Virus record (IMG/VR): IMGVR_UViG_3300042367_000228
Span: 308,017 to 372,016 of that record
Length of the DNA stretch: 64,000 nucleotides
Direction: 5' to 3' (one strand)
The stretch's first letter is position 1; each line of letters opens with the position of its first letter. Made by a program: the position numbers and the translations under genes. Positions 11,275-52,554 of the stretch are shown here, one piece after another. A model generated the notes under the pieces. That model was not told the DNA's origin. It did no database searches and was given only the letters and a program-made list of their open reading frames with translations.

Positions 11275-11532
11275 ATGAAATTTGAAACAGCTCCAATCCA
11301 AAATCAAATTCAATGCAGATCCTATGATGAAGCCAAAATGTATCTAATGTTCTTAGAAATAGACGGCAAACGAGGATGGCGCATGCCTACGCGATACGAA
11401 CGCACTAAATATTTTAGAGTAGGTCAACATGTTAATGAACCTGTATGGGATCTTCTAGATGAAGACACAGTTTTATTAAATAATAAAACACGACGATTAA
11501 TACCAGTAAGAGACAGAAACGATGACAATTGA
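11275..11532 (+). CDS. DUF1566/Lcl-like C-type-lectin-fold mini protein
   Basis: YDEA.MY...IDGKRGWRMPT..E...PVRD. Confidence 0.8.
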   Translation: MKFETAPIQNQIQCRSYDEAKMYLMFLEIDGKRGWRMPTRYERTKYFRVGQHVNEPVWDLLDEDTVLLNNKTRRLIPVRDRNDDN

Positions 11533-11755
11533 GATATCACCAAAGGAATACTGGAAAGAAATGTGCCGAGACGAAGCACAGCTGTATTGTTTGTTCTTAG
11601 ATATAGACGGTAAAAGAGGGTGGCGATTTCCTAAGTCTGATGAATTAAGTCACCATATCATGTGGTATAAAGAAGATTTAAACAATCCTGATTTAGGTGA
11701 TCCTGACGATTTGTACCCCATAGTACCAGTACGAGATAGAAAAGATGACGATTGA
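11522..11755 (+). CDS. DUF1566/Lcl-like mini protein
   Basis: EA.LYC...DGKRGWRFP...E...PVRD. Confidence 0.8.
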   Translation: MTIEISPKEYWKEMCRDEAQLYCLFLDIDGKRGWRFPKSDELSHHIMWYKEDLNNPDLGDPDDLYPIVPVRDRKDDD

Positions 11756-11999
11756 AATATCACCAATAGGTACCTGGAAGAAACCACTTCCTAAAGATCA
11801 AGCACAGCTTTATTGTATGTTCTTTGAACATGACGGCAGAGGATGGAGATTCCCAACTGAAGAAGAATGCTTAACCGATATGCGCGGAATCCCAACAATT
11901 ATAGGATGGTGTTGGAACGCAGAACGTATAGAAAGTGCCGACTATGATACTGCAAAATGCGATGTAATTTTAGTTCGCGATGTAAAAAATGATAAATAA
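11745..11999 (+). CDS. DUF1566/Lcl-like mini protein
   Basis: A.LYC...GWRFPT.EE...LVRD. Confidence 0.8.
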   Translation: MTIEISPIGTWKKPLPKDQAQLYCMFFEHDGRGWRFPTEEECLTDMRGIPTIIGWCWNAERIESADYDTAKCDVILVRDVKNDK

Positions 12000-12004
12000 T
12001 TTAT

Positions 12005-12274
12005 ATGACAATAGACGAACTTTTAACTGAATTAACCTTTCACGGTTCACAATGTACTAAAGACTGTAGTGGACATCGCGCAGGCTGGAAATGGGGTAAA
12101 GCCCATCCGAATGTTGCAACAACAAACAGTGCTTCTCATCCAAGTTTTAATAACGGTGTGCGCATTGCTAACGCTAATTCTAAAGTAGTAATGATGCCAG
12201 GTGTGCGTGGTGCAGGTGGTCGTTTTGTTAAGTTTACTCCAGAACCTAAACCATCTAAACGCAATAAACCTTAA
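12005..12274 (+). CDS. hypothetical protein
   Basis: CTKDCSGHRAGWKW motif; TAAATA upstream. Confidence 0.7.
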   Translation: MTIDELLTELTFHGSQCTKDCSGHRAGWKWGKAHPNVATTNSASHPSFNNGVRIANANSKVVMMPGVRGAGGRFVKFTPEPKPSKRNKP

Positions 12275-12293
12275 TAGGCCCCGCTGTACATAT

Positions 12294-13181
12294 ATGAGAG
12301 CATACGAATTTATATTAAAAGAGCTATTAGAACCAAAGAAACCTGGATCAGCTGTTAAAAGTTCAACTGTATCCGTGTCTGGAGCACAAGGGAGTATTTC
12401 TAAAATCTCCCAACAAAAATTTACCACATCTAAAGGAAATGTAGTTAAGGTTTGGTTTAAGCCAACTCAAGCTGATGACGGTAATCCATCAGTTGAAATT
12501 ACGTTTTATGTTAACGACACTGTTTACGATAATTCATCAAGTGAAGGTAAGGATATTGCAAACGATTTTGAAATTTTATCAGGAGTTGGATATCTAGTTA
12601 ATAACACGCTTGACAGAAAGAAGCTTAATCATTGTACATTTTTAGCATACTCGAGCAACCGAGATACTCGAACTAAATTTAATATTCCACTTGAAAAATA
12701 CCTAGTTAAATTAAATCACTCGTTAACAACGTTTTATGATCAAATTGCAAATTTTAATCCTACTCCTGAACAACTATCTGCAGAGTTAGAAAGAAGGAAT
12801 GCATTACTAGCAAGACTTAAAAGACCTTTAGAAACGTCTGTTAATATGGTAGACCCTAACCTAACAAACGCATTATCTCAAATGCATGCGTTTATTAATC
12901 AACCATTTGACGAAACATCTTTAGAACGCTATTCTAAGTTACTTACTGCAATTGAACATTCTTCATCTCACTACGTATATAATAACACCGGTTTTCCTAA
13001 ATTAATTAACGATCTGCATGAATTTAAATTGATAGTAAGAAGTTATTCGAAAGACGGAGCTGAAATTACATCTAATCGTAGAGCGTCAGTATATTCAAAA
13101 TTAATACAAAAGTTCTTTTCAGATAAATGGGATATCAAAACACAAGGTGCTCACTTTACCTTAACCCGCAAACTATCTTAA
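12294..13181 (+). CDS. hypothetical protein
   Basis: start reassigned to MRAYEFILKE leader. Confidence 0.7.
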   Translation: MRAYEFILKELLEPKKPGSAVKSSTVSVSGAQGSISKISQQKFTTSKGNVVKVWFKPTQADDGNPSVEITFYVNDTVYDNSSSEGKDIANDFEILSGVGYLVNNTLDRKKLNHCTFLAYSSNRDTRTKFNIPLEKYLVKLNHSLTTFYDQIANFNPTPEQLSAELERRNALLARLKRPLETSVNMVDPNLTNALSQMHAFINQPFDETSLERYSKLLTAIEHSSSHYVYNNTGFPKLINDLHEFKLIVRSYSKDGAEITSNRRASVYSKLIQKFFSDKWDIKTQGAHFTLTRKLS

Positions 13182-13375
13182 TAGGCCCCGCTGTACACTC
13201 TGCTGTACACATATATTCGCACGAATATACTCACGCATTATATAATATACATATAATGCGCTCATATACATTGACAACACACACTTACACATATATACTA
13301 TAAGCATAACACGTTGTATGCAATAGGCCCCGCTGTACACATACACTAAATAATATTATCAATTAAGGAGTAACC

Positions 13376-13582
13376 ATGGAAACGATTTATACTGATAGAA
13401 GAATAGTAGAAACTGGATGTATGTTGTATATGAGAATAATTTCAATTGGTACTAGCATTACTGTCTATGCTTTTAAACATGACGAGTTCCGTTGTGATAT
13501 GGAAATCTTCACCGGCGACAACTACACAGGTAACTTAGAAGAATGGTTGTTACTTCCTGTTAGTACTGCTGCATCTTACTAA
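13376..13582 (+). CDS. hypothetical protein, similar to 5359-5559
   Basis: AAGGAG RBS; FK....RCDME.F. Confidence 0.65.
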   Translation: METIYTDRRIVETGCMLYMRIISIGTSITVYAFKHDEFRCDMEIFTGDNYTGNLEEWLLLPVSTAASY

Positions 13583-13633
13583 AGGCCCCGCTGTAGCATA
13601 TACACGAATAAATAATACTTGTGGAGATATACA

Positions 13634-14524
13634 ATGAGAGCAAGAGAATTTATTGTTGAAGCGGTTAAGCTATCTATTAAAAGTATAGTACCGCCAACAG
13701 ACATTAGTCAAGAAGACAAACAACAGGCATTTGCTAACCTTAGTCAAACTGAAATTGATCAATTAGATCAGCCTAGATACATTTCAAAAGAAATGTGGCC
13801 TCAGTTCCGCAAATGGCTGGTGCAACGCAGTTTAGCAAGTAACCCTACACTTGATCCAGTTCTTACTGCATATACCCCGGGTGAAACTCTTGCTCTCTTT
13901 AAACATCCTGAGATTGCTAAATGGCATCAAGAGATTGTTCATTACAAAGTTCCTCCTGAATACAAAATGGTAGCATTTGTTCCTTGTGGCAAAACTAAAC
14001 CCTGGGCCAATGCAGCACGCGGCATTTACAAAAGCTACAATCAAATCATAAAAGACAAAAGATATCCGGTATACTTTGTAACGGTATCTGAACCACTAGG
14101 AATTGTTCCAAGTAGTCTTTGGAGTGATTTCCCTCAATACGATAATCCGGGTTTATTTAAAGATGATACTCAGCAATCCGGAGGATTGTTTACAGCTGAT
14201 TGGAAACAGTACTATGGTACAGGTAAACAGAAAATGCCATTTGATCCGGCAGCCTATTCTCAGTGTATCCAATTTTTAGGTAATATCATTAATCAGTTTA
14301 TTGAAAACAATCCGCAAGTTCAATATGTTAGTTTTGTTGAAGATAAGATGTTTAAGGCTAGTTCTAACAATGTTGGAACACATAGTGCAATGCTCTCCCA
14401 TACCAATAAAATAGATCCTGCGCATCGTTACCTGAAACGAGCCGCACCACGTGAAGAACCATATAACTATGTGGATCAATCTCTTTCAACTCATTTCGAT
14501 AAACCGGAATCCGATCAACCATAA
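13634..14524 (+). CDS. DUF5591-like (ArcS archaeosine-synthase core-like) protein
   Basis: FVPCGKTKPW and VTVSEPLGIVP...FPQYDNPG match the PC..KP / SP.G.VP..YD.P pattern. Confidence 0.6.
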   Translation: MRAREFIVEAVKLSIKSIVPPTDISQEDKQQAFANLSQTEIDQLDQPRYISKEMWPQFRKWLVQRSLASNPTLDPVLTAYTPGETLALFKHPEIAKWHQEIVHYKVPPEYKMVAFVPCGKTKPWANAARGIYKSYNQIIKDKRYPVYFVTVSEPLGIVPSSLWSDFPQYDNPGLFKDDTQQSGGLFTADWKQYYGTGKQKMPFDPAAYSQCIQFLGNIINQFIENNPQVQYVSFVEDKMFKASSNNVGTHSAMLSHTNKIDPAHRYLKRAAPREEPYNYVDQSLSTHFDKPESDQP

Positions 14525-15065: not shown

Positions 15066-15284
15066 ATGATTGAACTAGCACCACTATCTGATTATAAGAT
15101 GTCATACGACAAAGCCTGGTTGTATTGTGCTACCTTGACCTATAAGAACAAATACGATTGGCGTATTCCGACTGATGCCGAGTTTACATATAACGAAGAA
15201 ATTGATGAAGAATCTTTTGATCAATCAGACGAACCACATCATAGCCATTGGCGTGTTCAACCAGTGAGGACTAAAGATGCTTGA
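15066..15284 (+). CDS. DUF1566/Lcl-like mini protein
   Basis: MIELAP..YDKAWLYC..KYDWRIPT..E...PVRT. Confidence 0.85.
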   Translation: MIELAPLSDYKMSYDKAWLYCATLTYKNKYDWRIPTDAEFTYNEEIDEESFDQSDEPHHSHWRVQPVRTKDA

Positions 15285-15501
15285 GTTTGCCCCAATGCCG
15301 GCCGGCCGGTTCTCATTTGATGATGCCTGGTTATATTGTGCTACACTAACATATAATAACAATTATGACTGGCGCATACCAACTGAAGATGAATTTTGCA
15401 ACTACGAAGAAATTGATTGCGATGCGTTTGATCAGAATGATGAAGGTCTTAAGATAGCTAAAGTAACACATAAAATCTGTCCAGTGCGCACTGCTGATTA
15501 A
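15277..15501 (+). CDS. DUF1566/Lcl-like mini protein
   Basis: family motif; close paralog of 15066. Confidence 0.85.
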   Translation: MLEFAPMPAGRFSFDDAWLYCATLTYNNNYDWRIPTEDEFCNYEEIDCDAFDQNDEGLKIAKVTHKICPVRTAD

Positions 15502-15560
15502 AATACCATTTGTAAAGTCCTAAGTTTTGCGCTATAATAATGTTTTATGTAAGGAGCCAT

Positions 15561-15851
15561 ATGCTAGTAGCCACTTGTCAATCAAAATTTATAACGTATG
15601 CCGAAGCTGTTATGTATTGTTTGTTTTTAGATCACCAAGGAAAGAAAGGCTGGCGGTTGCCAACTTTACTTGAATGGGCAGATACTGCAGATGGCAGACT
15701 TACAACTAATACATGGTATCGAGAGAGTACGAATGAAGAACGAGCATTGCTTGCAAAACAATACAAACATACCCAGCAAGCTATAGAAGCTATGATTGAA
15801 CCATATGAAAATCGTAAAACAGGTATAGCAGTTGCAGTGAGGGATGAATGA
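15561..15851 (+). CDS. DUF1566/Lcl-like mini protein
   Basis: EAVMYC..GKKGWRLPT; start after AGGAG. Confidence 0.8.
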   Translation: MLVATCQSKFITYAEAVMYCLFLDHQGKKGWRLPTLLEWADTADGRLTTNTWYRESTNEERALLAKQYKHTQQAIEAMIEPYENRKTGIAVAVRDE

Positions 15852-16075
15852 TAGAAATATTAGCTAACCCACCTGGGATCAGTCGGAAGTTATATAATCG
15901 CGATGCAGCCTTTTTGTATATAATTACTCTAGTCCATAATGGACATGCAGACTGGCGATTTCCTACTCCAGACGAATGGGTTAACAGTCCTTTAGCGTAT
16001 ATGGCATGGCATCAAGGAAGAATTGATGACGATAGATTTTTCAGCTATCACATATACCCAGTGAGAGATATATGA
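15848..16075 (+). CDS. DUF1566/Lcl-like mini protein
   Basis: DWRFPT.DE...PVRD. Confidence 0.8.
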   Translation: MIEILANPPGISRKLYNRDAAFLYIITLVHNGHADWRFPTPDEWVNSPLAYMAWHQGRIDDDRFFSYHIYPVRDI

Positions 16076-16266
16076 TTAGATTTGCTAAACCATCCGGATG
16101 GTTAAACAACACAACTCCGGAAGCTGCTGACATGCACGTATTGTTTTATGAAGAAGACGGTTTAAAATACTGGAGGAGAGCAACTAACGAAGATTTTATT
16201 GACTTTGCAATACACGTTCCTGAATCATTGTTATCTAATACATGTATTCCGGTAAAGGATTTATGA
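16072..16266 (+). CDS. divergent DUF1566/Lcl-like mini protein
   Basis: EDG..YWR.AT.ED...PVKD. Confidence 0.65.
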   Translation: MIRFAKPSGWLNNTTPEAADMHVLFYEEDGLKYWRRATNEDFIDFAIHVPESLLSNTCIPVKDL

Positions 16267-16484
16267 GTATGCTTGAATTAGCCCCGCCATCAGAAAAAAT
16301 GACATATGACGAAGCAATTATGTATTGCTTTTGGTTAGAACACGATGGAAAGAAAGGCTGGAGAATGCCAACACATGAAGAATGGGCAAAGACTAAAGGC
16401 ATCATGGTGTACACTTGGAGACAGAATGATCACCGTACGATGATGGATACGATGCCTGTAGTACCGGTAAGAGGACAATTATGA
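16263..16484 (+). CDS. DUF1566/Lcl-like mini protein
   Basis: YDEAIMYC..GKKGWRMPT. Confidence 0.85.
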   Translation: MSMLELAPPSEKMTYDEAIMYCFWLEHDGKKGWRMPTHEEWAKTKGIMVYTWRQNDHRTMMDTMPVVPVRGQL

Positions 16485-16894
16485 AATGGTTTAACCGAAT
16501 ATTCAATCGCAATGTATATTTAAAATTTGACGTACCTACAAACCCTCCAGACAACAACAGAGTGCGTTATGTTGTAGGAGTCCCGGTTAATCACTATGAG
16601 AAAAAAATCATTGAAATCGTTTATACTGGAATACTATGTTCCAGTGATGATGAAGCAACGATGCATTTGTTTATGATGAGTAAGCATGATGGAAAGAGAG
16701 GATGGCGACTACCTACAATACACGAAGCTATATACTGTTCAGAGCTATCAGTAGTTAAGCATTTCTCTGATTGGAATTCACTTAGAGTTCCATTAGAATT
16801 AGTTTTAGTAAGAGATGTTACAGAAGATGAGTATAACTATTACAATGGACCTATAACACGTTTCTTTAAGCAGTTTGCGCAGTGGACTTATTGA
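16481..16894 (+). CDS. DUF1566/Lcl-like protein with N- and C-terminal extensions
   Basis: DEA.M...DGKRGWRLPT..E...LVRD. Confidence 0.75.
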   Translation: MKWFNRIFNRNVYLKFDVPTNPPDNNRVRYVVGVPVNHYEKKIIEIVYTGILCSSDDEATMHLFMMSKHDGKRGWRLPTIHEAIYCSELSVVKHFSDWNSLRVPLELVLVRDVTEDEYNYYNGPITRFFKQFAQWTY

Positions 16895-16925: not shown

Positions 16926-17909
16926 ATGTCAAAAGAAGAAGTAGGTACAGGTGTAAGCCAAGAAGAGTCAGTTACGCTTAATGGCGTAACAGTAACAGAA
17001 GAATCACATGCTGATGTATATGCTGAAGCACACGCAGGTGCAAGTGCAGAAGTAACTGATACAAGTGTATCGGCAGAAGCACACGCAGGTGCAAGTGTTG
17101 GTGCAGAAGCCGGTGCAAGTGTTACTTTAGGTGATGTTACATTAGAAGCTGAAGCACACGCTACTGCTGAAGTTGAAGCCACTGCTAACGCAAATGCAGG
17201 ATGGACAGGTACAGATGTAGTAGCTGAAGCAAGCGCAGGTGTTGAAGCGCGTGCAGAAATTGGTGCAAGTGCATCAGTTGGTAATGAAGATGTTGGCACA
17301 GTTAGTGTTTCGAGTGGTGCATACGCAGAAGCTAATGCAGGTGTTGAAGTAAGTGGTTCAGTTGGATTACACGGCGCACAAGGATATGCCGGAGCATCAG
17401 TTGGTGCAAGTGTTGGTGTAGAAGCTAATGCAGTAGCAGAAAGCCATGGTGTGTCTGCTGAAGCAGGTGCAGGTGTTAGCATTGGATTACAAGCAGGTGC
17501 AGAAGTTGGCGGTAAAGCTGAAGTACATGGCAACACTATTAGCATCGGTGTAGAAGGTGAACTAGAGTTATTAGCAGGTGTAGAACTTAATGCTGAATTA
17601 TCAGTTGATACTACTCCAGTTGTAGAATTAGCAGAACAAGTAGCCGATGACACTGCAAAGCTAGCAGAGCAAGCAGCGTTAGAAGCAGCCCGCATTGCTC
17701 AAGCAAAAGCAGAATACGCTGCTCGCGTTGCCCAAGAAGAAGCAGAACACGCAGCTAGAGAAGCACGAGAAGCATCAGAAAGAGCAGCTAGAGAAACACA
17801 AGCCGCAGCTGAAAGTGCAGCTAGAGAAGCAGATCGTTTAGCTAGAGAAGCAGCCAATCGTGCAGCAAATGAGATGAATAAAGCATTTAAAAAAGTAAAG
17901 TTCTGGTAA
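16926..17909 (+). CDS. Ala/Gly/Val/Glu-rich repeat protein with C-terminal coiled coil
   Basis: AEAHAGAS/GASVG repeats; AAREA heptads; AGGAG RBS; TAAATA upstream. Confidence 0.75.
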   Translation: MSKEEVGTGVSQEESVTLNGVTVTEESHADVYAEAHAGASAEVTDTSVSAEAHAGASVGAEAGASVTLGDVTLEAEAHATAEVEATANANAGWTGTDVVAEASAGVEARAEIGASASVGNEDVGTVSVSSGAYAEANAGVEVSGSVGLHGAQGYAGASVGASVGVEANAVAESHGVSAEAGAGVSIGLQAGAEVGGKAEVHGNTISIGVEGELELLAGVELNAELSVDTTPVVELAEQVADDTAKLAEQAALEAARIAQAKAEYAARVAQEEAEHAAREAREASERAARETQAAAESAAREADRLAREAANRAANEMNKAFKKVKFW

Positions 17910-18535: not shown

Positions 18536-18549
18536 CAATGGAGGTAACT

Positions 18550-19620
18550 ATGCCGAATACACTTGAAACCACTGCTATTGCTATTTTAGAAGGAGAAGTA
18601 ACTACCACTACTATTTCCGATTCTGATTCACTCGAATTAATTGAACATCTGCAGGCATGGTTACCAAACTATCCTAAAGGCTCAAACAAATTTATTTCTT
18701 TCTTGCAACACAATGTATCGCCATTGTATGCAATATACGGTGTTTACTCTGCAGTTGATAATGGCAGCTTAGAGTTAACTTCACGTAACTTTCAATCTAT
18801 GATGCTATTTGAATCGGAGTTTAAAGACTTAATTAAGCATTTTGAGAATCCAGATAAGAAGACTAACTTCTTTGAATCGATGCGTAATGGTACTGAGATA
18901 TCAAGAGTGGAATTAGAATTAACCAGTCCATTCTGTATCCAACCTGAAGATGAGATCGGTACCGGTACATGGGAATACGTTGAACCCGAGTTACCTGAGA
19001 TTGATGATGACGATACAACAAATCCAGCTACTACGACAACCGCAAGTGCTCCTGGTACTATTCAAATTCCGTTAAAAGATATTCTTGATACTGCTGCTAA
19101 GAAGGTATTTGGTGTAGGAGTTAAAAAGACAGTTGCTGAAAAAGATCAAGAACAAGATGATCATGATGCATACTATGTATATACACAGTATTTGTATCAG
19201 TTCACTAGTGCATGGTTCCCTAACGACGCTCCTACTATCAATGTAGTATCGCAAAAGTTTTGGGATGAACATGAATGTATTGATGATCAACACATTTCAG
19301 AGTACTTAGAATCGATTATTCCAGATTGGTCTAATAACTGGTGTGAAACTACGGACAGTGTATTTGAATACACTGGCGGTTCAACTAAAGCAGAAGCTAT
19401 TGCTTATTTAAAAGCAACAGGGTTCTTTAAAGAAGAAGAACTATTTGATGTTGATGATGAAGAATCTGATAAAACAGATATCTTACTAAGTTATCTTGAA
19501 GGTCAACCTGAAGAAGTAATTTCTAAGTTTCTCAAAGAGGCACTTACACATCTTGATGATAGCCAAATTCAAGACTTAATTCAAAAGTATGAAGACGTTT
19601 GGCACGAAGAGGATGAATAA
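18550..19620 (+). CDS. acidic hypothetical protein
   Basis: long ORF; GGAGG RBS. Confidence 0.75.
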   Translation: MPNTLETTAIAILEGEVTTTTISDSDSLELIEHLQAWLPNYPKGSNKFISFLQHNVSPLYAIYGVYSAVDNGSLELTSRNFQSMMLFESEFKDLIKHFENPDKKTNFFESMRNGTEISRVELELTSPFCIQPEDEIGTGTWEYVEPELPEIDDDDTTNPATTTTASAPGTIQIPLKDILDTAAKKVFGVGVKKTVAEKDQEQDDHDAYYVYTQYLYQFTSAWFPNDAPTINVVSQKFWDEHECIDDQHISEYLESIIPDWSNNWCETTDSVFEYTGGSTKAEAIAYLKATGFFKEEELFDVDDEESDKTDILLSYLEGQPEEVISKFLKEALTHLDDSQIQDLIQKYEDVWHEEDE

Positions 19621-19689: not shown

Positions 19690-20394
19690 GTGTTTCTTTT
19701 ACTATCAACTAGCAACATCAAAACACAAAAAGGTGTTAAATTAGGATATGCTACTTATGTCTTACACTTATCACCATCTGATCTCAGTGGTGTTATCAAC
19801 ACTTGCCCAAAAGCAACACTAGGTTGCAAAATAGGTTGCCTAAACACTTCAGGTCACGGCGGCATGTACACTGACATTGAAGACAGTGTAGTTCAACAAG
19901 CTCGCATACGCAAAACAAAATGGTTTGCTACAGGACGCGACAGTTTCTTAGAAGCTCTAGTAGTTGACATCAAACGCGCAATTAAACAAGCTACAAAGAA
20001 AGGTCTTATTCCTGTATTTCGCCTCAATGGCACAAGTGATCTCTCATGGGAGAAATACAAAATTAACGGTATGAATATCTTTGAACTATTTCCAACTGTT
20101 CAATTCTACGACTACACTAAGGTGTTGCATCGTAAAGTTGGACACATCCATAACTATCATTTAACATTCTCTAGAGGCGAGTCTAATCAAGCAGAAGTTG
20201 ATTATGCTATTGCTAACGGTATGAATGTTGCTTATGTATTTGATAAAACTCCAGCGACATACGATGGTATGACTGTATTTGATGGCGACGACACTGACTT
20301 ACGATTCCTTGATCCGACAGGTGTAATTGTAGGTCTTAAGGCAAAAGGTCGCGCACGTAAAGACACTAGTGGATTTGTAATTAGAACAAAATAG
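19690..20394 (+). CDS. GP88-family protein (CxxxxxxCxxxC)
   Basis: TCPKATLGCKIGCL, FRLNGTSD, FYDYTK, YHLTFS, DGD.TDLRFLDP, GLKAKG. Confidence 0.75.
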   Translation: MFLLLSTSNIKTQKGVKLGYATYVLHLSPSDLSGVINTCPKATLGCKIGCLNTSGHGGMYTDIEDSVVQQARIRKTKWFATGRDSFLEALVVDIKRAIKQATKKGLIPVFRLNGTSDLSWEKYKINGMNIFELFPTVQFYDYTKVLHRKVGHIHNYHLTFSRGESNQAEVDYAIANGMNVAYVFDKTPATYDGMTVFDGDDTDLRFLDPTGVIVGLKAKGRARKDTSGFVIRTK

Positions 20395-20401: not shown

Positions 20402-20614
20402 ATGATTGAATCAGGAATGTGTTCTAGTAATTTTCTAACATACGATGAAGCCTGGCTCTTCTGTATCACTTGCACACACTTCAAGAAATATGACTGGCGA
20501 ATGATGACACGACGTGAATTTATAGAGTATAAACCAAGAGAAAAATGGTTCGAAGTCACCGGCGTGTCACATTTAATAGCCCAGGTACTACCTGTGAGAG
20601 ATGTAAATGATTAG
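20402..20614 (+). CDS. DUF1566/Lcl-like mini protein
   Basis: YDEAWLFC..KYDWRM.T. Confidence 0.8.
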   Translation: MIESGMCSSNFLTYDEAWLFCITCTHFKKYDWRMMTRREFIEYKPREKWFEVTGVSHLIAQVLPVRDVND

Positions 20615-21073: not shown

Positions 21074-21144
21074 ATTACCATTTGCTTACTAATAAATATT
21101 TTGCTATAATATGTTTTTATTTACAAACCTTACGGAGTACGTTT

Positions 21145-21441: not shown

Positions 21442-21448
21442 GGTAAGC

Positions 21449-22259: not shown

Positions 22260-22333
22260 ACTTTGAAGTCGCACCTAACGGTGCTCGAACTGATAATTGC
22301 CATATGCAAAACTTAACTGGAGAACTACGATGA
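22256..22333 (+). pseudogene. truncated DUF1566-family remnant
   Basis: MNFEVAP start, stop after 25 aa. Confidence 0.5.
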
Positions 22334-43299: not shown

Positions 43300-43367
43300 T
43301 AAACCATTTGCAATCCAGCGCATAGTTTGTTATACTATGCGCTTACTTACTTAGTTTAGGAGCAGTT

Positions 43368-45317: not shown

Positions 45318-45746
45318 ATGTCAAAGGCACACACTAAAGAAATTAGTATCTATTTAGAAGATGTCCAATGGATCGATCTACGTTATTTTAGATCGTGGTT
45401 AGAGAAACATGATGCATCTGAAGCAGCAACAATGCATCAAATCGTTGATAAGTTATGGCATGGAGATACTGACATCAATTGGAGATCCATGCCTGCAATC
45501 AAACAATGGCTTATGACTATTGAACATGATGTTGCAACAAAATTGTATGATTTAATTGAACACTTGCAAGATAGGGTGTTAGATACAGATGTACTAACAC
45601 CTAAAGAAATCTATGGTTGGGAAATTAATGATACAGCTATAGAACACACCCCTAAACACCTTAAGTTGGTTGTTAGCAATTACTTTAGGCCTCTCGAAAG
45701 AATTGATCAGCCTGCAAAGCCTGACCCAGTATTAACTTTGGTATAA
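45318..45746 (+). CDS. hypothetical protein
   Basis: promoter cassette. Confidence 0.65.
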   Translation: MSKAHTKEISIYLEDVQWIDLRYFRSWLEKHDASEAATMHQIVDKLWHGDTDINWRSMPAIKQWLMTIEHDVATKLYDLIEHLQDRVLDTDVLTPKEIYGWEINDTAIEHTPKHLKLVVSNYFRPLERIDQPAKPDPVLTLV

Positions 45747-45815
45747 TTACCACTTGCTTACCAGTGCATAGTATGTTATACTATGCACTTACTAACAACA
45801 ACTGCGGAGCGCACT

Positions 45816-46567: not shown

Positions 46568-46765
46568 ATGCACTTTATAACATTAAAAAGAGTAGTCAAT
46601 AAATCAACAGTACAAGTAGACACATTTGAAATAGACATTAGAGTAAAAGACATTGTAGCATTTCATGATGGCCTGATTGTAGTAGGCGCCCATCAGTTCC
46701 ATGTAATTGAATCAAGAAGAGACATCCACGATAAAATTCGTAAAGCAGATACAACATGGGAATAA
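46568..46765 (+). CDS. hypothetical protein
   Basis: AAGGA RBS; V.ES..DI..KI. Confidence 0.6.
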   Translation: MHFITLKRVVNKSTVQVDTFEIDIRVKDIVAFHDGLIVVGAHQFHVIESRRDIHDKIRKADTTWE

Positions 46766-46917
46766 TTCCGACTAACCCGCCACCGAGCATGCCACTGCAG
46801 ACATTGCAAAGTTCATATTTTTCAAGTCCTGTGATTAGCAACAGCCATATGCAAGAGTTAAGGACAGGACTTAGCGAACAAATTATTAAGCCAGTACTTA
46901 AATGGGCAGGTAGAACG

Positions 46918-47145
46918 ATGTTAAACTTAGACCTAGCTCCTAGGTCACAAAACAAAATGTCATTTGACGAAGCTCAAATGTATATTCTCTTTTGTAAACA
47001 CAATGGATACAAGAACTGGAGACTTCCAACGCGTGAAGAATGGGAAACTATTAACGGTTGGGAGACACCTGTATGGTTAGTTGAAAAGGACAACGTAGTA
47101 ACGGATAAAGACTGGTATGCACAACCAGTACGGGACAAGAAATGA
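46918..47145 (+). CDS. DUF1566/Lcl-like mini protein, array 1
   Basis: FDEA.MY..GYKNWRLPT.EE...PVRD; longer in-frame ORF from 46756. Confidence 0.8.
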   Translation: MLNLDLAPRSQNKMSFDEAQMYILFCKHNGYKNWRLPTREEWETINGWETPVWLVEKDNVVTDKDWYAQPVRDKK

Positions 47146-47384
47146 TAGAGCTAGCGCCACATGAGCTATGGAAGTATGACGTAAACAAACATGAAGCTAG
47201 GCTGTACATATTCATGCTTAAAGGCTATAGAATGGGTACATTAGGAGAGATGCAATCATTAATCGACGCTATACGAGAAGTTGATCATGAAATGTGGGAC
47301 GCATGGACACTAGATGCAATAGATAGCGACGCTATACCAGACGACGAAACCGGAACAGCTATACCACTGAGAGATATAACATGA
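47142..47384 (+). CDS. divergent DUF1566/Lcl-like mini protein, array 2
   Basis: MIELAP..EA.LY..GYRM.T..E...PLRD. Confidence 0.75.
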   Translation: MIELAPHELWKYDVNKHEARLYIFMLKGYRMGTLGEMQSLIDAIREVDHEMWDAWTLDAIDSDAIPDDETGTAIPLRDIT

Positions 47385-47623
47385 TAGAATATGGAAAGAA
47401 ATCAGAAAACGATTTAAACTACGATGCGGCATTTATGTATTGCTTTTGGCATGAGCCAGTGGGCACTTGGAGGCTTCCGACTGAGCAGGAATACTTCCAA
47501 AAGATGCGACTAAAACACCCAAGTAGTATAATTCCCACTTGGTATGAAGATAGAGATCAGCTTGCAGAGAAAGTACATCAACAACCTGCTAAAATGCGAG
47601 TAGTGCCTGTACGATCGCTATGA
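47381..47623 (+). CDS. DUF1566/Lcl-like mini protein, array 3
   Basis: family motif. Confidence 0.8.
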   Translation: MIEYGKKSENDLNYDAAFMYCFWHEPVGTWRLPTEQEYFQKMRLKHPSSIIPTWYEDRDQLAEKVHQQPAKMRVVPVRSL

Positions 47624-47877
47624 CCCAGGTTAGTTACTATGCTAATAATATAAGGTTTCACCATTTGATTGAAGTAGCTCCAACGTCTAATGAAATGATG
47701 ACGTACGACCATGCTAAGATGTATATCATGTTCTATGAACACAATGGACATAGAGATTGGAGGTTGCCTACGTTACAAGAATGGCTAAGCCATAATCCGC
47801 CATTGATAGGGTGGGATGATCACGGAGAACATATTAGTGATATAGTTCGTTATGTAACCCCAGTAAGAGACCTATGA
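47620..47877 (+). CDS. DUF1566/Lcl-like mini protein, array 4
   Basis: family motif. Confidence 0.8.
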   Translation: MTQVSYYANNIRFHHLIEVAPTSNEMMTYDHAKMYIMFYEHNGHRDWRLPTLQEWLSHNPPLIGWDDHGEHISDIVRYVTPVRDL

Positions 47878-48101
47878 AACTTGAACTAGCTCCTCCATCT
47901 ATTCAACTACACAGAGATGAAGCATTCCTATATGTTTGGACGTGTACACACAACAACAAGTATGACTGGCGTCTGCCTACCCTACATGAATCAAGCAAAA
48001 ATAGTCTTACTGGCTGGAATGAATATGACTTATATGTATTTGCACATGAGATATCATACGACCCAATCTATTGGACAATTACCCCAGTGAGAGACTTATG
48101 A
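47874..48101 (+). CDS. DUF1566/Lcl-like mini protein, array 5
   Basis: family motif. Confidence 0.85.
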   Translation: MKLELAPPSIQLHRDEAFLYVWTCTHNNKYDWRLPTLHESSKNSLTGWNEYDLYVFAHEISYDPIYWTITPVRDL

Positions 48102-48313
48102 TTGAATTAGCTCCAGTATCTACAGAAAGGATGACCTATGACAATGCTAAATTGTACATCCTGTTCTATGAATATAATGGCTATAGAGATTGGCGTCTGC
48201 CTACATTCACTGAATGGATCACCCGCGACGATGTATATGGGTGGGATGATACAGAACCATCAATTGATTATGGTCCAAAACTTCGTGTTGTAACCCCAGT
48301 GAGAGACTTATGA
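48098..48313 (+). CDS. DUF1566/Lcl-like mini protein, array 6
   Basis: family motif. Confidence 0.85.
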   Translation: MIELAPVSTERMTYDNAKLYILFYEYNGYRDWRLPTFTEWITRDDVYGWDDTEPSIDYGPKLRVVTPVRDL

Positions 48314-48591
48314 TTGAAATAGCCCCAAGATTCGCACAACGTATGACATACGACGAAGCCATATTAAACTTATTCATGTTTGTACATAATGGAAAGAAAG
48401 ACTGGCGCATGCCTACCGAATACGAATACTACTACGGTACCGCCCGAGCTATAGAGAAGTCGTGGCATCGCGAAAAAGTAGATGAGTTTACTAACTGGTA
48501 CTTAACCCCTGTGAGAGATGTCAAATTTGTTTACATACCCAGCATAACGTGTTATAATAAAGACATACTGTTTAATAAGAGATACAGATGA
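48310..48591 (+). CDS. DUF1566/Lcl-like mini protein, array 7
   Basis: family motif with C-terminal tail. Confidence 0.8.
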   Translation: MIEIAPRFAQRMTYDEAILNLFMFVHNGKKDWRMPTEYEYYYGTARAIEKSWHREKVDEFTNWYLTPVRDVKFVYIPSITCYNKDILFNKRYR

Positions 48592-48848
48592 TAGAACTAG
48601 CACCTAAAGAACTATGGCTTGAACAATCTACACAAAACGAAGCATTGATGCACATATTCTTCCAAAAGGGTTATCGCTTGCCTACATTTGAAGAACTACC
48701 TCAAATGAGACAAATACTAAACCGAGAAGTAATATTAGTGTGGACTGAAAACACAGTACGTGACCCATTGTTTGAAATGTTTGATCTAGATAACAGGTCA
48801 TTGCTTCCGTTTAAAGCTAAAGTTATTCCAGTGAGGGATGTATGTTAG
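48588..48848 (+). CDS. divergent DUF1566/Lcl-like mini protein, array 8
   Basis: MIELAP..GYRLPT.EE...PVRD. Confidence 0.75.
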   Translation: MIELAPKELWLEQSTQNEALMHIFFQKGYRLPTFEELPQMRQILNREVILVWTENTVRDPLFEMFDLDNRSLLPFKAKVIPVRDVC

Positions 48849-49087
48849 AGTTTGGACCGAGATTAGAAAGAGGTATCAACTCGTATGAGTTAATATCTCA
48901 AGGCATTAACTCATATGATGATGCGTTTTTGGCCTGTTTAACATGTGACCATAGGGGATATTATGATTGGCGTTTACCAACCAGAAAAGAGTATTTTGAC
49001 GAGGATTTAATGTCTGGAGCGTGGTATGAAAGCAAGCCATCATGGCGCAGAGCATGGTATGTAGTACCAGTGAGGGATAAATGTTAG
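48842..49087 (+). CDS. DUF1566/Lcl-like mini protein, array 9
   Basis: family motif; internal duplicated GINSY. Confidence 0.8.
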   Translation: MLEFGPRLERGINSYELISQGINSYDDAFLACLTCDHRGYYDWRLPTRKEYFDEDLMSGAWYESKPSWRRAWYVVPVRDKC

Positions 49088-49299
49088 AAATAGGCCCATG
49101 CTCATCTCACACACTAATATTAGATGAAGCCTGGCTATACTGTATTACACTAGAACATAACGGACATAGAGATTGGAGATTGCCTACTTGGCAGGAAATG
49201 AATAGCCATCAAATGCGAAACTGTAGAGGCTGGACGAACCCGTACTATCTTAGTTCTAGTCTTAGCCAAATGCTTGTTTACCCAGTGAGAGATTTATGA
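49081..49299 (+). CDS. DUF1566/Lcl-like mini protein, array 10
   Basis: family motif. Confidence 0.85.
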   Translation: MLEIGPCSSHTLILDEAWLYCITLEHNGHRDWRLPTWQEMNSHQMRNCRGWTNPYYLSSSLSQMLVYPVRDL

Positions 49300-49514
49300 T
49301 TGAAACAGGATACCAATCAGCACAACAATTAGAGTATGACGAAGCACTGCTGTATTGTTATACCTGTACCGATAGACAAAAATATGACTGGCGTATGCCT
49401 ACATCAAAAGAACACAACCACTTCCCAGCTACTACTTGGCATATTGATAGAATACCCGATATGGTCCTATGGATGGAACTTTATGTAATTCCAGTGAGAG
49501 ATAAAGATGTTTGA
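49296..49514 (+). CDS. DUF1566/Lcl-like mini protein, array 11
   Basis: family motif. Confidence 0.85.
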   Translation: MIETGYQSAQQLEYDEALLYCYTCTDRQKYDWRMPTSKEHNHFPATTWHIDRIPDMVLWMELYVIPVRDKDV

Positions 49515-49734
49515 ACAAGCACCTATGATCAAGTATGTTACTATAGACGAAGCTGAACTGTACACGATGACGCTAACCTATAACAATCACTACGATTGGA
49601 GGCTCCCTACTATAATAGAACTACGTCACGCTACGCCTGATATATCCAAACGCCCAGTATGTTGGCATCAGCATGATCTTATGGGTCAGTTGGATGATAT
49701 GAAATGCGCATTGATCCCAGTGAGAACTATATGA
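49507..49734 (+). CDS. DUF1566/Lcl-like mini protein, array 12
   Basis: family motif. Confidence 0.85.
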   Translation: MFEQAPMIKYVTIDEAELYTMTLTYNNHYDWRLPTIIELRHATPDISKRPVCWHQHDLMGQLDDMKCALIPVRTI

Positions 49735-49967
49735 TTGAATTAGGACCACATGACGACTGCTTTGTAACGATAGACGAAGCAATGTTATACATCTATACCC
49801 TAACCCACAACAACAAATATGACTGGCGTTTTCCGACAGCAGCAGAATATGATGACACTGATGAGATGCCTCCTATGACCTGGCATAGCACCTGGTATGA
49901 CTATACCGTACATTACGCTAATGATTCAGAACGAGCAGTTTACCCAGTGAGAGATATAGATGATTGA
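49731..49967 (+). CDS. DUF1566/Lcl-like mini protein, array 13
   Basis: family motif. Confidence 0.85.
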   Translation: MIELGPHDDCFVTIDEAMLYIYTLTHNNKYDWRFPTAAEYDDTDEMPPMTWHSTWYDYTVHYANDSERAVYPVRDIDD

Positions 49968-50184
49968 CATACACACAAACAGTAAACTGGTCTCATACAC
50001 AGAAGCCGAACTATATGCTTGGACTTGTACCAATCAAGGCTATTATGATTGGCGATTACCTAACTTTGATGACCCTATACCATTCTTTATGCAAACCGAA
50101 TGCTGGATTTCCTATACGTTGCCATATACTGATTACTTCGCAGAAGGCAGAACAATAGTAGTAGTGAGAGATAAAGATGATTGA
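49960..50184 (+). CDS. DUF1566/Lcl-like mini protein, array 14
   Basis: family motif. Confidence 0.8.
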   Translation: MIDIHTNSKLVSYTEAELYAWTCTNQGYYDWRLPNFDDPIPFFMQTECWISYTLPYTDYFAEGRTIVVVRDKDD

Positions 50185-50401
50185 AGCTAAACTTGTATCA
50201 CACTCAAAATCGTGTGAAGAAGCTGAACTTTACATTTGGACACTAACACACGAAAACAAGTACGATTGGCGTTTTCCAACACGCGATGAATGCGTAAAAC
50301 TTACAGGTGGTCCAATATGGTGTGATTCACTAATCAAAAGTCCATATATAGAGCCACTCGACCGCTTTTATTTAATAGCAGTGAGAGATACAGATGCTTG
50401 A
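50177..50401 (+). CDS. DUF1566/Lcl-like mini protein, array 15
   Basis: family motif. Confidence 0.8.
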   Translation: MIEAKLVSHSKSCEEAELYIWTLTHENKYDWRFPTRDECVKLTGGPIWCDSLIKSPYIEPLDRFYLIAVRDTDA

Positions 50402-50597
50402 GTTTGCTAGTCAATCCCATTTACTCCCTTATTACGAAGCTTGGCTTTACTGCGTTACTTGTACTCACAACAACAAGTATGACTGGCGATATCCTACTAT
50501 TGGAGATGTATGGGAGCATCCGCAGATTCTCAAGAATAATTTTACACCACCATACGACTTGTTCTACATAACCCCAGTGAGAACTCAAGATGATTGA
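50394..50597 (+). CDS. DUF1566/Lcl-like mini protein, array 16
   Basis: family motif. Confidence 0.85.
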   Translation: MLEFASQSHLLPYYEAWLYCVTCTHNNKYDWRYPTIGDVWEHPQILKNNFTPPYDLFYITPVRTQDD

Positions 50598-50811
50598 ACA
50601 AGCTACTACTAAACGGCGTGACTTCTCATATGACGAAGCTTGGCTATACGTAGCCACTTGCACCCATAAAAAGAAATACGATTGGCGCATGCCTACTATG
50701 CTAGAACACTTTGGAAGAAAGTATCGACCTCTGATACTTGGACAATGGTATGAGCGAGACTATTTTGAACACCGAACATACGTAACCCCTGTGAGAACAA
50801 ACGATGATTGA
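50590..50811 (+). CDS. DUF1566/Lcl-like mini protein, array 17
   Basis: family motif. Confidence 0.85.
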   Translation: MIEQATTKRRDFSYDEAWLYVATCTHKKKYDWRMPTMLEHFGRKYRPLILGQWYERDYFEHRTYVTPVRTNDD

Positions 50812-51001
50812 AGCAGCCCCTATGTCACATTTAATGCCATACAACGATGCATTCTTATATGCGATAACTTGCACCCATAACGACAAGTATGACTGGCGAA
50901 TGCCAACTGCTGGCGACTTCTCCAATAATGTTAAACTAAGAACAACTGATCAACGCCGCAACATACAATTTTGTCCTATCAGAGGATCAAGAGATGATTG
51001 A
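50804..51001 (+). CDS. DUF1566/Lcl-like mini protein, array 18
   Basis: family motif, short variable segment. Confidence 0.8.
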   Translation: MIEAAPMSHLMPYNDAFLYAITCTHNDKYDWRMPTAGDFSNNVKLRTTDQRRNIQFCPIRGSRDD

Positions 51002-51209
51002 ACTAGCCCCACGAACACCGGAACTTATGGACTATGACCTAGCTTGGCTATACTGTATTACACTTGGCCACAATGACTGTTATGACTGGCGTATACCAAC
51101 AGCCGACGAATATAAGAGTTCTCGGTGTAGTTTGTCTTGGCATGAAACTAGATATATGTTCCTAGATCCATTATATCATGTAACCCCAGTGAGAACTAAC
51201 AATGATTGA
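50994..51209 (+). CDS. DUF1566/Lcl-like mini protein, array 19
   Basis: family motif. Confidence 0.85.
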   Translation: MIELAPRTPELMDYDLAWLYCITLGHNDCYDWRIPTADEYKSSRCSLSWHETRYMFLDPLYHVTPVRTNND

Positions 51210-51426
51210 ACAAGCCCCTAAGACTACTGACAAATTTGATGCCTATAGTGCCGAAATTTACATATACACTTGCACACACGACAACAAGTATGACTGGCGA
51301 ATGCCTACTATAAGAGAATGTGCAGACTTGATTATAACCGGTAGTTGGAATGCTAGTGATTTTAACCATATGACAATGTCCCCACATAGGTGGAAGGTAA
51401 CCCCTGTGAGAACTAACAATGATTGA
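51202..51426 (+). CDS. DUF1566/Lcl-like mini protein, array 20
   Basis: family motif. Confidence 0.85.
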   Translation: MIEQAPKTTDKFDAYSAEIYIYTCTHDNKYDWRMPTIRECADLIITGSWNASDFNHMTMSPHRWKVTPVRTNND

Positions 51427-51652
51427 ATATGGCCTTAAATTAGAAAAAGTCGTAGCCTATGACACAGCTTGGTTATACTGCGCTACACTAACACACGACA
51501 ACAAGTACGACTGGAGATTACCAACCAACACAGAATGGCATAAGTTCTTTAGACAAGACCCAGTTGCACCAAACTATTCACGGGTTTGGTATAAAGATAG
51601 ACTCACACCATATCAGTGGTATTGCTTACCGGTGAGAACTAACAATGATTGA
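51419..51652 (+). CDS. DUF1566/Lcl-like mini protein, array 21
   Basis: family motif. Confidence 0.85.
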   Translation: MIEYGLKLEKVVAYDTAWLYCATLTHDNKYDWRLPTNTEWHKFFRQDPVAPNYSRVWYKDRLTPYQWYCLPVRTNND

Positions 51653-51857
51653 ACTTGCTATACGACCTCAAGAAGAAATGGATTACGATACTGCATGGCT
51701 GTATTGTCTAACACTTGACTATAACGGACATAAAGATTGGCGATTGCCTACAGGAACTGAATATACTACTACGGATGCGCTATCATTTAGTTGGTTTGAA
51801 GAAAGAAAAACCGGCGAAAGATGGGTATGCCAACCAGTAAGGACTATAAATGATTGA
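51645..51857 (+). CDS. DUF1566/Lcl-like mini protein, array 22
   Basis: family motif. Confidence 0.85.
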   Translation: MIELAIRPQEEMDYDTAWLYCLTLDYNGHKDWRLPTGTEYTTTDALSFSWFEERKTGERWVCQPVRTIND

Positions 51858-52077
51858 ACTAGCCCCAGAAGCAAAAGAATATATGAACTATGACACCGCC
51901 TGGCTATACTGCGCTACGCTAACCCGCAACAACAAGTATAACTGGCGATTACCGACTCATAGAGAATACAACAGATCCCTACTTATAATGAATTGGTTTG
52001 AAGATAGATATCGTATCTTGGGATTGGGCGATGCGCGTGACCTTCATGTAACCCCAGTAAGGACTATAAATGATTGA
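51850..52077 (+). CDS. DUF1566/Lcl-like mini protein, array 23
   Basis: family motif. Confidence 0.85.
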   Translation: MIELAPEAKEYMNYDTAWLYCATLTRNNKYNWRLPTHREYNRSLLIMNWFEDRYRILGLGDARDLHVTPVRTIND

Positions 52078-52285
52078 ACTAGCACTACAAACACAACAAG
52101 AAATAACTTATGATCTAGCTTGGCTATACTGTATTACACTTGACTACAATGGCCATAAGGACTGGCGACTACCAACAGCTAACGAATATAAAAGTTTTCA
52201 GTTTACATCAGCTTGGCATGAAGGTAGATTTCAAGTTCTACAAGAATATTATGTACTCTATGTAATCCCAGTGAGAACCTTATGA
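52070..52285 (+). CDS. DUF1566/Lcl-like mini protein, array 24
   Basis: family motif. Confidence 0.85.
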   Translation: MIELALQTQQEITYDLAWLYCITLDYNGHKDWRLPTANEYKSFQFTSAWHEGRFQVLQEYYVLYVIPVRTL

Positions 52286-52554
52286 TCGAACTTGCTCCCT
52301 ACTTATACCAAACGAAACAAGACGATGCGTTCTTATTCATTATTACTTGCACACACAAAGACAAATACGACTGGCGTTTCCCTACTATGTTTGAAATCTT
52401 ATATAGTGGTATGTTTGAGAATTTAGATCCATGGAGATCTGATAATGTATATCCTAAACTTATTCACTTGATTGACTTGACATACACAGCTGTTCCGGTA
52501 AGAGATTATCCTTTTCCAACTAGACCTCCCGGACTTTATGTACAAAAGCAATGA
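52282..52554 (+). CDS. DUF1566/Lcl-like mini protein, array 25
   Basis: family motif with C-terminal tail. Confidence 0.8.
   Translation: MIELAPYLYQTKQDDAFLFIITCTHKDKYDWRFPTMFEILYSGMFENLDPWRSDNVYPKLIHLIDLTYTAVPVRDYPFPTRPPGLYVQKQ

Follow-up and report, generated by a model that had tools for sequence, protein, structure and literature searches.

Six clusters of family genes in the window

The window analysed is a stretch of 64,000 nucleotides that forms the last 64 kb of the 372-kb genome of an uncultured jumbo phage (IMG/VR record IMGVR_UViG_3300042367_000228, positions 308,017 to 372,016). Between positions 11275 and 52554 it carries 49 intact genes of a single family, most of which encode a minimal ~70-aa C-type-lectin-like domain. 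We identified these genes by a motif scan and by an HMM built from the window. All 49 ORFs lie on the + strand and none was found elsewhere in the window. With a seed HMM that did not include them, 47 scored E<1e-5, while two are divergent: 16072-16266 (E 3e-4) and 28669-29067 (E 0.012). The observation of a 49-member family made in the initial annotation is therefore confirmed. However, the span 11275-52554 that it assigned to the family only marks the first start and the last stop, as the family is not contiguous and is distributed over six clusters, listed here together with single members, promoters and a possible remnant:

11275-11999 (+), cluster 1: three family genes (11275-11532, 11522-11755, 11745-11999) overlapping by 11 nt, HMM E 6e-14 to 7e-21
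15066-16894 (+), cluster 2: seven family genes (15066-15284, 15277-15501, 15561-15851, 15848-16075, 16072-16266, 16263-16484, 16481-16894), the last with a ~55-aa N-terminal extension
20402-23069 (+), cluster 3: eight family genes with one non-family ORF (21082-21441) between them, downstream of the GP88-family gene 19690-20394
21966-22259 (+), canonical full-size Lcl_C/DUF1566 member (97 aa)
22297-22806 (+), second canonical Lcl_C member; the ORF runs from TTG 22297 (169 aa), likely starts being ATG 22330 or ATG 22516
28669-29632 (+), cluster 4: divergent member 28669-29067 (132 aa, N-terminal extension, own promoter cassette 28587-28676) and member 29372-29632, with a non-family gene (29152-29370) between them
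31613-33102 (+), cluster 5: four family genes (31613-31840, 31830-32051, 32614-32826, 32854-33102), interrupted by a promoter cassette and the non-family gene 32118-32555
32556-32624 (+), possible C-terminal remnant of a lost copy, ending in an IPVR-type motif immediately before gene 32614 (not significant, E 2.4)
45734-45796 (+), promoter cassette of the palindrome-bearing class (repeat families D1/D10), inferred from sequence only, heading the transcription unit that runs through four small non-family genes into cluster 6
46756-52554 (+), cluster 6: unbroken run of 25 family genes, each overlapping the next by 4-8 nt; the first has an N-terminal extension if it starts at 46756, the domain beginning at 46918
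48530-48558 (+), internal sigma-70-like promoter (11 of 12 consensus bases, TG-extended; consensus match only) in the C-terminal tail of gene 48310-48591

Family genes make up 11.8 kb of the 41.3-kb span. The rest holds other genes, including two HNH/NUMOD3 endonucleases, the GP88-family gene and two tRNAs. Where the initial annotation counted one remnant, we found three short motif fragments that could be remnants (32556-32624, 22238-22333 and 28336-28464), but none is statistically significant.

The shared motif given in the initial annotation, M(I/L)E(L/I)AP-x-(Y/W)DEAxLYC-x-(D/G)WR(L/M)PTxxE...W...PVR(D/T), is right. R of WR is invariant (49/49), while E/D of PTxxE is found in 49/49, A of DEA in 48/49, W in 47/49, P in 45/49 and T in 46/49 members, the mid-segment W in 43/46, and V and R of PVR in 45/48 and 47/48 respectively. 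We then examined whether variability is uniform along the gene, an outcome that had been set beforehand, together with a fold that is not C-type-lectin-like and a majority of unexpressed pseudogenes, as one that would contradict the initial reading. It is clearly non-uniform: column entropy is 0-1.3 bits at the scaffold motif positions, but 3.1-4.05 bits at profile positions 19-24 (a short N-terminal loop) and at 52-78 except the Trp. The latter segment, between PTxxE and PVR, also carries the length variation. No member has a hydrophobic stretch that could be a signal peptide or membrane helix (maximum 19-residue Kyte-Doolittle mean 1.02), and net charge and pI are unremarkable compared with neighbouring small ORFs.

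Relationship to Lcl_C/DUF1566 and predicted fold

The family is homologous to Lcl_C/DUF1566 (Pfam PF07603). The two canonical, longer members exceeded the gathering cut-off of 34.9 bits when scanned (49.9 bits for 21966-22259 and 57.1 bits for 22297-22806), and 29 of the 49 members reached E<0.1. The eight ~70-130-aa members scanned individually scored 13-25 bits or gave no hit (11275-11532) and matched only profile positions ~10-63 of 117; the mini form falls outside the curated model. No member hit the canonical Ca2+-dependent Lectin_C model at E<0.1, there is no conserved cysteine pair, and no Ca2+ or carbohydrate motifs were detected.

The AF2 model of the canonical member 21966-22259 is confident (pLDDT 96.4), and Foldseek placed it on 8q4e, the solved C-terminal domain of Legionella pneumophila Lcl (E 2.1e-6, TM 0.84), followed by many CTLDs, with a Bdellovibrio fibre-tip domain among the structural hits. 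The second canonical member hit 8q4e_A by phmmer (E 2.8e-7). The model of the mini form is also confident (pLDDT 94.3) and all 18 of its PDB hits are CTLDs, with a compact poxvirus CTLD on top at TM 0.70, although none is significant (E 1.6 at best). The mini form comprises strand 1, two helices, a conserved Trp, an irregular variable segment and a closing C-terminal strand, with only two short strands after helix 2. Alignment with the canonical member showed that it is a deletion form, lacking a ~20-residue beta-hairpin that is absent from 47 of 49 copies, and hence the C-terminal beta-sheet is not complete. The invariant residues (WR..PT..E, PVR) match residues that are structural in the solved Lcl domain, and the R...E spacing of six residues matches the Arg338-Glu344 salt bridge described for Lcl (PMC11162425).

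The variable segment is the positional counterpart of the region that DGRs diversify in DUF1566 proteins (PMC5758913), in support of the initial annotation, which had noted DUF1566/Lcl folds as common DGR targets. Variability concentrated in a C-terminal segment of a CLec fold is a resemblance in layout and not evidence of retro-mutagenesis. Moreover, the ~70-aa form has lost the hairpin at the heart of the canonical C-terminal variable region, thus its binding surface cannot be assumed to equal that of DGR targets.

Orthologues and selection

Related metagenomic phages (designated L005, L006, L009 and L011) carry largely colinear 1:1 orthologues, mostly 75-96% identical (a few 58-64%), against a median of 31% between paralogues. 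Of the 25 genes of cluster 6, 19 have reciprocal best hits in L006/L005, and cluster 1 genes have orthologues in L011 at 67% and 85% identity. In all 31 computable orthologue pairs dN/dS was below 1 (0.02-0.64). Pooled values were 0.22 for the N-terminal scaffold and 0.43 for the variable segment, compared with 0.05-0.11 for flanking enzymes and 0.19-0.34 for other hypothetical genes. Within each orthologue line the variable segment is therefore conserved and is not evolving freely. Since dN/dS never exceeds 1, an arms-race signature is not demonstrated; closest-paralogue comparisons have saturated dS (about 1.2-1.3). The members are intact genes under purifying selection and not pseudogenes.

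Arrays nevertheless gain and lose members, with 25 copies here, at least 31 in L009 and at least 38 in L006. In L011 the interior genes of cluster 2 are replaced by different paralogues, while the flanks stay about 81% identical at the DNA level. The same phage was assembled identically from several samples.

Translational coupling and promoter cassettes

Family genes overlap by 4-11 nt and form translationally coupled polycistrons, in which the PVR codons of one gene provide the Shine-Dalgarno sequence of the next. The Arg codon of PVR is AGA/AGG in 31 of 34 cases where an ORF starts 4-13 nt downstream, against 5 of 13 otherwise (Fisher p 4.7e-4; across all loci p 5.9e-5). By contrast, 95 of 128 Arg codons in the WR motif are CGN. 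Sigma-70-type promoter cassettes fill the region: 22 promoters match at least 11 of 12 consensus bases, 19 of them on the + strand, and about 25-30 conserved promoter/5′UTR cassettes are present.

Possible roles of the arrays

The interpretation offered in the initial annotation, a stored library of binding specificities expressed early in the cytoplasm as anti-defence decoys, host-factor binders or a donor pool for a displayed adhesin, is partly supported. Our analysis establishes the family and its homology to Lcl_C/DUF1566, the minimal form with its lost hairpin, the restriction of paralogue differences to two segments, the maintenance of each paralogue as a separate orthologue under purifying selection, and the coupled gene organization. 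Expression, its timing and location, and binding itself are inferred. Early or mid-infection transcription by host RNA polymerase is presumed from promoter consensus alone for its timing, and cytoplasmic location from the absence of signal peptides and the gene neighbourhood, in a phage known only from metagenomes. In the explanation we favour, tentatively and with a probability of roughly 0.45, the products would act as a co-expressed cocktail of small binding modules, each with a fixed specificity. The most likely roles would be neutralising or sequestering different host factors, such as defence proteins or their signals, across a range of hosts. The mini form, however, lacks most of the sheet that forms the ligand surface in canonical relatives, so it may bind weakly or act mainly through oligomerisation. 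This arrangement would resemble the terminal multigene families of large eukaryotic DNA viruses and would be a germline-encoded counterpart of what DGRs achieve by mutagenesis. In a stronger version, which is not excluded but seems unlikely, the arrays are a phage innate library of minimal lectin-fold modules, all co-expressed at once from coupled polycistrons, in which each module is locked onto a different host defence protein, signal or surface precursor. The set, rather than any one gene, would then determine which hosts the phage can overcome, as the fixed-gene alternative to DGR hypervariation on the same fold and a new scaffold class for anti-defence proteins.

Other explanations appear less likely. 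Lcl-CTD is a trimer, with Trp315 at its interface, and by analogy the mini domains could assemble into homo- or mixed trimers whose combinatorial surfaces bind small ligands or glycans inside the cell (nucleotide-sugars, cell-wall precursors, modified DNA or signalling nucleotides) rather than proteins. Translational coupling would give roughly equal amounts of neighbouring paralogues, natural two-domain fusions exist (P0057, P0058), and sugar-nucleotide enzymes (epimerase/dehydratase family) lie nearby in the genome; but the missing part of the canonical domain and the lack of Ca2+ or carbohydrate motifs leave this doubtful. Display on capsid, tail or fibres, widening the range of surfaces to which the particle sticks as CLec-fold tips do in DGR-bearing phages, is suggested by the typical use of CLec-fold and DUF1566 domains as phage and bacterial adhesion modules and DGR targets (PMC5758913). 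It is improbable, since members are only ~70 aa without any anchoring or fibre-attachment domain, none in the window exceeds 169 aa, and they sit among small genes headed by sigma-70-type promoter cassettes and not in a structural module.

We consider similarly improbable that the family consists of largely dispensable duplicates, expanded by unequal crossing-over in a tolerant region. Selection is indeed more relaxed than on neighbouring enzymes, copy number varies and possible decayed remnants are present. Yet all 49 reading frames are intact despite about 31% median identity, which implies ancient duplications, codon choice is tuned for coupling, and orthologues are retained across phages whose synonymous divergence reaches saturation. 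The least likely is a pool of silent donor cassettes for one expressed, displayed member, as in pilin or VSG-type antigenic variation, or a set of DGR-linked targets. The tandem layout of a conserved scaffold with variable inserts would fit, and several metagenome assemblies break inside the array, which could reflect population heterogeneity but is equally explained by repeats. Against this, every copy has its own ATG and Shine-Dalgarno sequence, and protein-level purifying selection extends to the N terminus. DNA identity between copies (60-90% over at most 137 nt, with no long identical tracts) is too low for recombination, orthologues are stable between phages, and no anchored long family member exists in the window. 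Nor was a reverse transcriptase or a template-repeat-like duplicate found in the window: of the nine ORFs of 240 aa or more, leaving out 804-1541 and 1536-2291, which were not scanned, five gave no Pfam hit (7189-8508, 9099-9821, 12201-13181, 16926-17909 and 18538-19620), while 13619-14524 hit DUF5591 and 25375-26160 hit HNH/NUMOD3, neither of which is a reverse transcriptase.

Comparison with related systems

No description of a comparable expansion was found in the literature or in the deposited phage genomes searched, in agreement with the initial annotation. The nearest lineage-specific expansion in a phage is the set of about 35 zinc-ribbon copies in Bacillus phage G (PMC7824862). Poxviruses and African swine fever virus carry terminal multigene families. 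In these cases too, dozens of small diverged paralogues lie in arrays in a variable region of a very large virus, with copy-number turnover between relatives. This is a functional analogy only: the fold is different, the copy number here is higher than in phage G, and the genes here overlap and are translationally coupled.

With Lcl the family shares the GWRLPT..E core and a disulfide-free C-type-lectin-like fold, predicted here. Lcl, however, is a secreted, surface-attached trimeric adhesin on a collagen-like stalk that binds glycosaminoglycans, whereas here the domain stands alone without signal peptide. In cellular proteins the domain typically occurs as 4-17 repeats inside giant proteins, while here each repeat is its own gene. 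DGR variable proteins of the CLec2/DUF1566 class (e.g. Legionella LdtA) and of the FGE-type class (Treponema TvpA, Bordetella phage Mtd) belong to the same fold superfamily, and weak profile hits to TvpA and FGE-like domains were observed. Here diversity is stored as many fixed genes rather than generated by a reverse transcriptase, the variable segment is shorter, and there is no surface anchor. Finally, the best structural matches for the 70-aa model were compact C-type-lectin-like domains (poxvirus A33/A35 ectodomain, Link module, intimin/invasin tip), similar in size and topology but without sequence relationship. Those domains are extracellular and disulfide-bonded, and A33 is a dimer on a membrane anchor.

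Organization of the family

A motif scan and a profile HMM built from the window found 49 ORFs of one family, all on the + strand, and none elsewhere in the 64 kb. With a seed HMM from which they had been excluded, 47 scored E<1e-5, while two, 16072-16266 (E 3e-4) and 28669-29067 (E 0.012), are divergent. Hence the observation made in the initial annotation, a 49-member family of small genes, is confirmed. The ORFs lie in six clusters, which together cover 11.8 kb:

11275-11999 (+), cluster 1, 3 genes
15066-16894 (+), cluster 2, 7 genes
20402-23069 (+), cluster 3, 8 genes
28669-29632 (+), cluster 4, 2 genes
31613-33102 (+), cluster 5, 4 genes
46756-52554 (+), cluster 6, 25 genes, unbroken

The motif proposed in the initial annotation proved accurate: the Arg of WR is invariant, and the Ala of DEA, the Trp, Pro-Thr, the Glu three residues later, a mid-segment Trp and Val-Arg of PVR are each at or above 90%. 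Three short fragments could be decayed copies but are not significant.

The region forms the last 64,000 bases of a 372,031-bp JGI metagenome contig (3300042400 Ga0454393_0000001), and identical sequence was assembled from several other samples, including an IMG/VR genome of 372,016 bp. Its gene content is phage-like, with HNH/NUMOD3 homing endonucleases, a GP88-family gene, two tRNAs, a lytic transglycosylase and an NrdC.10-like AAA ATPase, whose best isolate match is Pseudomonas jumbo phage PA5oct at 48% identity. A scan of GTDB genomes with this ATPase found nothing and thus gave no clue to the host. Similarly, Pfam searches with neighbouring small gene families gave nothing useful.

Predicted fold and relatives

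Pfam Lcl_C (DUF1566) was hit by 29 of 49 members at E<0.1, but only the two longer members, 21966-22259 and 22297-22806, passed the curated cut-off. The 97-aa member was modelled with pLDDT 96.4 and matched the solved Legionella Lcl C-terminal domain (8q4e; E 2.1e-6, TM 0.84), followed by dozens of C-type-lectin-like domains. A 72-aa member was modelled with pLDDT 94.3 as strand, helix, helix, loop and two short strands. All 18 PDB hits and most BFVD hits of this mini form are C-type-lectin-like domains, led by the compact poxvirus A33/A35 ectodomain (TM up to 0.70); this structure-search support is consistent, although none of the E-values is statistically significant. Alignment of the two forms showed that the mini form keeps the conserved Trp and the closing strand but lacks a ~20-residue beta-hairpin.

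The invariant Arg and Glu are six residues apart. This is the spacing of the Arg338-Glu344 salt bridge, which the Lcl structure paper lists among the few conserved surface residues, the rest being core (PMC11162425). The conserved motif is therefore structural. We also considered the N-terminal MIE motif as a capsid-targeting or cleavage signal, by analogy with T4, but the model places it in strand 1, so that it reads as a fold element.

A profile search of 1.84 billion representative proteins found 4,833 relatives at E up to 1e-3. Giant proteins with 4-17 repeats matched only the N-terminal half of the profile, whereas 70-110-aa proteins matched it end to end. Natural two-domain fusions also occur: in two metagenome proteins (P0057 and P0058) two mini domains are fused head to tail in one ORF, showing that gene boundaries in these arrays can be lost, giving repeat proteins. 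The phmmer hits to ETV6/TELSAM fusion constructs are spurious sums of weak repeats.

Against 50,697 deposited phage records, megablast of the array gave no match, and neither did tblastn of two 70-aa members, while the canonical member gave only five weak hits. In PHROGs, only 7 of 49 members gave weak hits. The mini family is therefore absent, or undetectable, in the deposited phage genomes searched.

Variation and selection

We next examined how variability is distributed along the gene, since uniform variability had been named beforehand as a result that would refute the initial reading. Column entropy is 0-1.3 bits at the scaffold motif positions, but 3.1-4.05 bits at profile positions 19-24 and at 52-78 (apart from the Trp), where length also varies. 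Uniform variability is thus ruled out. Paralogues are old, with a median identity of 31% and a maximum of 60%. Accordingly, recent amplification (a gene accordion) was rejected, as the closest paralogues are only 60% identical and dS for paralogue comparisons is saturated.

Related metagenomic phage contigs (designated by L numbers) have the same layout, with the array followed by the ATPase and the transglycosylase, and carry at least 38 members (L006), at least 31 (L009) and 13 (L007, interspersed). Nineteen of the 25 genes of the big array have reciprocal best hits in L006/L005, largely in the same order and mostly at 75-96% identity, and six do not. In L011, the interior of cluster 2 is replaced by other paralogues between conserved flanks. 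In contrast, strain-level turnover between L009 and L010 was rejected: they are 99.8% identical and the apparent gene differences are gene-calling artefacts. Five independent contigs of related phages (L005, L006, L009, L010 and L012) begin or end inside the mini-lectin array, owing either to repeat-induced assembly breaks or to population heterogeneity in the array.

dN/dS between orthologues
Family, 31 computable orthologue pairs: 0.02-0.64
Family, N-terminal scaffold (pooled): 0.22
Family, variable segment (pooled): 0.43
Family, closing strand (pooled): 0.26
Neighbouring ATPase and transglycosylase: 0.05-0.11
Other hypothetical genes: 0.19-0.34

The copies are therefore real genes, each kept for its own sequence, in a birth-and-death regime, and no positive selection was demonstrated. 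The flanking ATPase (53394-54266) showed a much higher dS against L005 (1.8) than the array genes showed against L006 (0.1-0.9), suggesting mosaicism or recombination around the array, or simply that L005 and L006 are different phages.

Expression signals

Neighbouring family genes overlap by 4-11 nt. The codons of the C-terminal PVR motif lie 5-10 nt before the next start and read as purine-rich Shine-Dalgarno-like strings. The Arg codon there is AGA/AGG in 31 of 34 cases where an ORF follows within 4-13 nt, but in only 5 of 13 where none follows (Fisher p 4.7e-4; p 5.9e-5 over all loci), while the Arg of the WR motif mostly uses CGN. On this sequence evidence, the motif therefore does double duty, and the arrays are translationally coupled.

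The window holds 22 sigma-70-type promoters, predicted from a match to at least 11 of 12 consensus positions, 19 of them on the + strand; by our own rough estimate about 4 would be expected by chance. In addition, some 25-30 copies of a conserved promoter/5′UTR cassette in two classes were found on the + strand between 19600 and 58800. The cassette comprises a -35-like hexamer, a 17-nt spacer, a TG-extended TATAAT, a T-rich leader, then GGAG and ATG, and each copy heads a small gene or gene group. Examples are:

28587-28676 (+), promoter/5′UTR cassette
35223-35315 (+), promoter/5′UTR cassette
40433-40522 (+), promoter/5′UTR cassette

The second class has TATACT as its -10 element, bracketed by an inverted repeat (GCGCATAG / CTATGCGC), which looks like an operator for a dimeric regulator:

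34439-34501, second-class cassette
34851-34913, second-class cassette
35638-35700, second-class cassette
39916-39978, second-class cassette
42351-42413, second-class cassette
43288-43350, second-class cassette
45734-45796, second-class cassette, upstream of the big array
57360-57422, second-class cassette

The big array also contains one internal promoter-like site (48530-48558). No member has a hydrophobic segment. The idea of DNA mimicry or extreme acidity was rejected, the median pI being 5.07 against 5.42 for neighbouring ORFs.

Possible role of the arrays

The initial annotation had proposed a stored library of binding specificities expressed early in the cytoplasm, as anti-defence decoys, host-factor binders or a donor pool for a displayed adhesin, and this interpretation is only partly supported. 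The family, its layout, its pattern of variation and the maintenance of its members between related phages are shown by the sequence analysis, and fit a co-expressed, cytoplasmic set of small binding modules with fixed, distinct surfaces; expression, location and binding are themselves inferred from sequence alone. That the modules would act on host factors or defences is an inference from analogy and context, to which we give a probability of about 0.45.

Among the alternatives, oligomeric lectin-like ligand binders seem unlikely but come next, ahead of virion adhesins and dispensable duplicates, both of which we regard as doubtful. A recombination or DGR-linked cassette pool is the least compatible with the data: every copy has its own start and ribosome-binding site, DNA identity between copies is low, orthologues are stable, and no reverse transcriptase turned up among the larger ORFs scanned within the 64-kb window.

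The domain family and its use as a DGR target are already known (PMC5758913). We found no description of a stand-alone minimal form or of a ~50-gene expansion in a phage, literature searches having returned nothing relevant and those on generic paralogue terms and on 'HbP1' being uninformative. A comparative study of 224 jumbo phages reported no C-type-lectin-fold FGS domain in jumbo phages and called a ~35-copy zinc-ribbon expansion in Bacillus phage G unprecedented (PMC7824862).

If the members are specific binders, this clade of giant phages would solve the many-targets problem by keeping dozens of fixed variants of one tiny scaffold, rather than by mutagenising one gene as DGR phages do on the same fold. 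This would give a ready-made panel of about 50 natural variants per genome, and hundreds across relatives, for finding new anti-defence or host-takeover activities, and would define the smallest known functional form of the DUF1566/CLec fold. It would also show that multigene families of the kind known from large eukaryotic viruses exist in phages. In this view, the codon-level fusion of a protein motif with the next gene's ribosome-binding site is a neat example of dual coding that stabilises an array.

Other features of the region

Six consecutive genes of 107-128 aa (34488-36849) each have their own promoter cassette, and none has a Pfam match. A 327-aa ORF (16926-17909) carries 12/24-nt periodic internal repeats encoding an Ala/Gly/Glu/Val-rich sequence and has no Pfam or PHROG hit; the 265-aa ORF on the opposite strand is probably a shadow of it. 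Two HNH plus NUMOD3 homing endonuclease genes are inserted among the + strand small genes:

25375-26160 (-), HNH plus NUMOD3 homing endonuclease gene
37956-38675 (-), HNH plus NUMOD3 homing endonuclease gene

A relative, L011's sister contig, has one at a different position next to GP88. Finally, a 16-nt tandem repeat (9 units) at 63857-64000, in which the 372-kb contig ends, contains the same GCGCATAG half-site as the operator-like promoters. A second assembly (L014, 20607-20870) reads through into more GCGCAT-rich and hairpin-like repeats, so this may be a regulatory, origin or terminus region.
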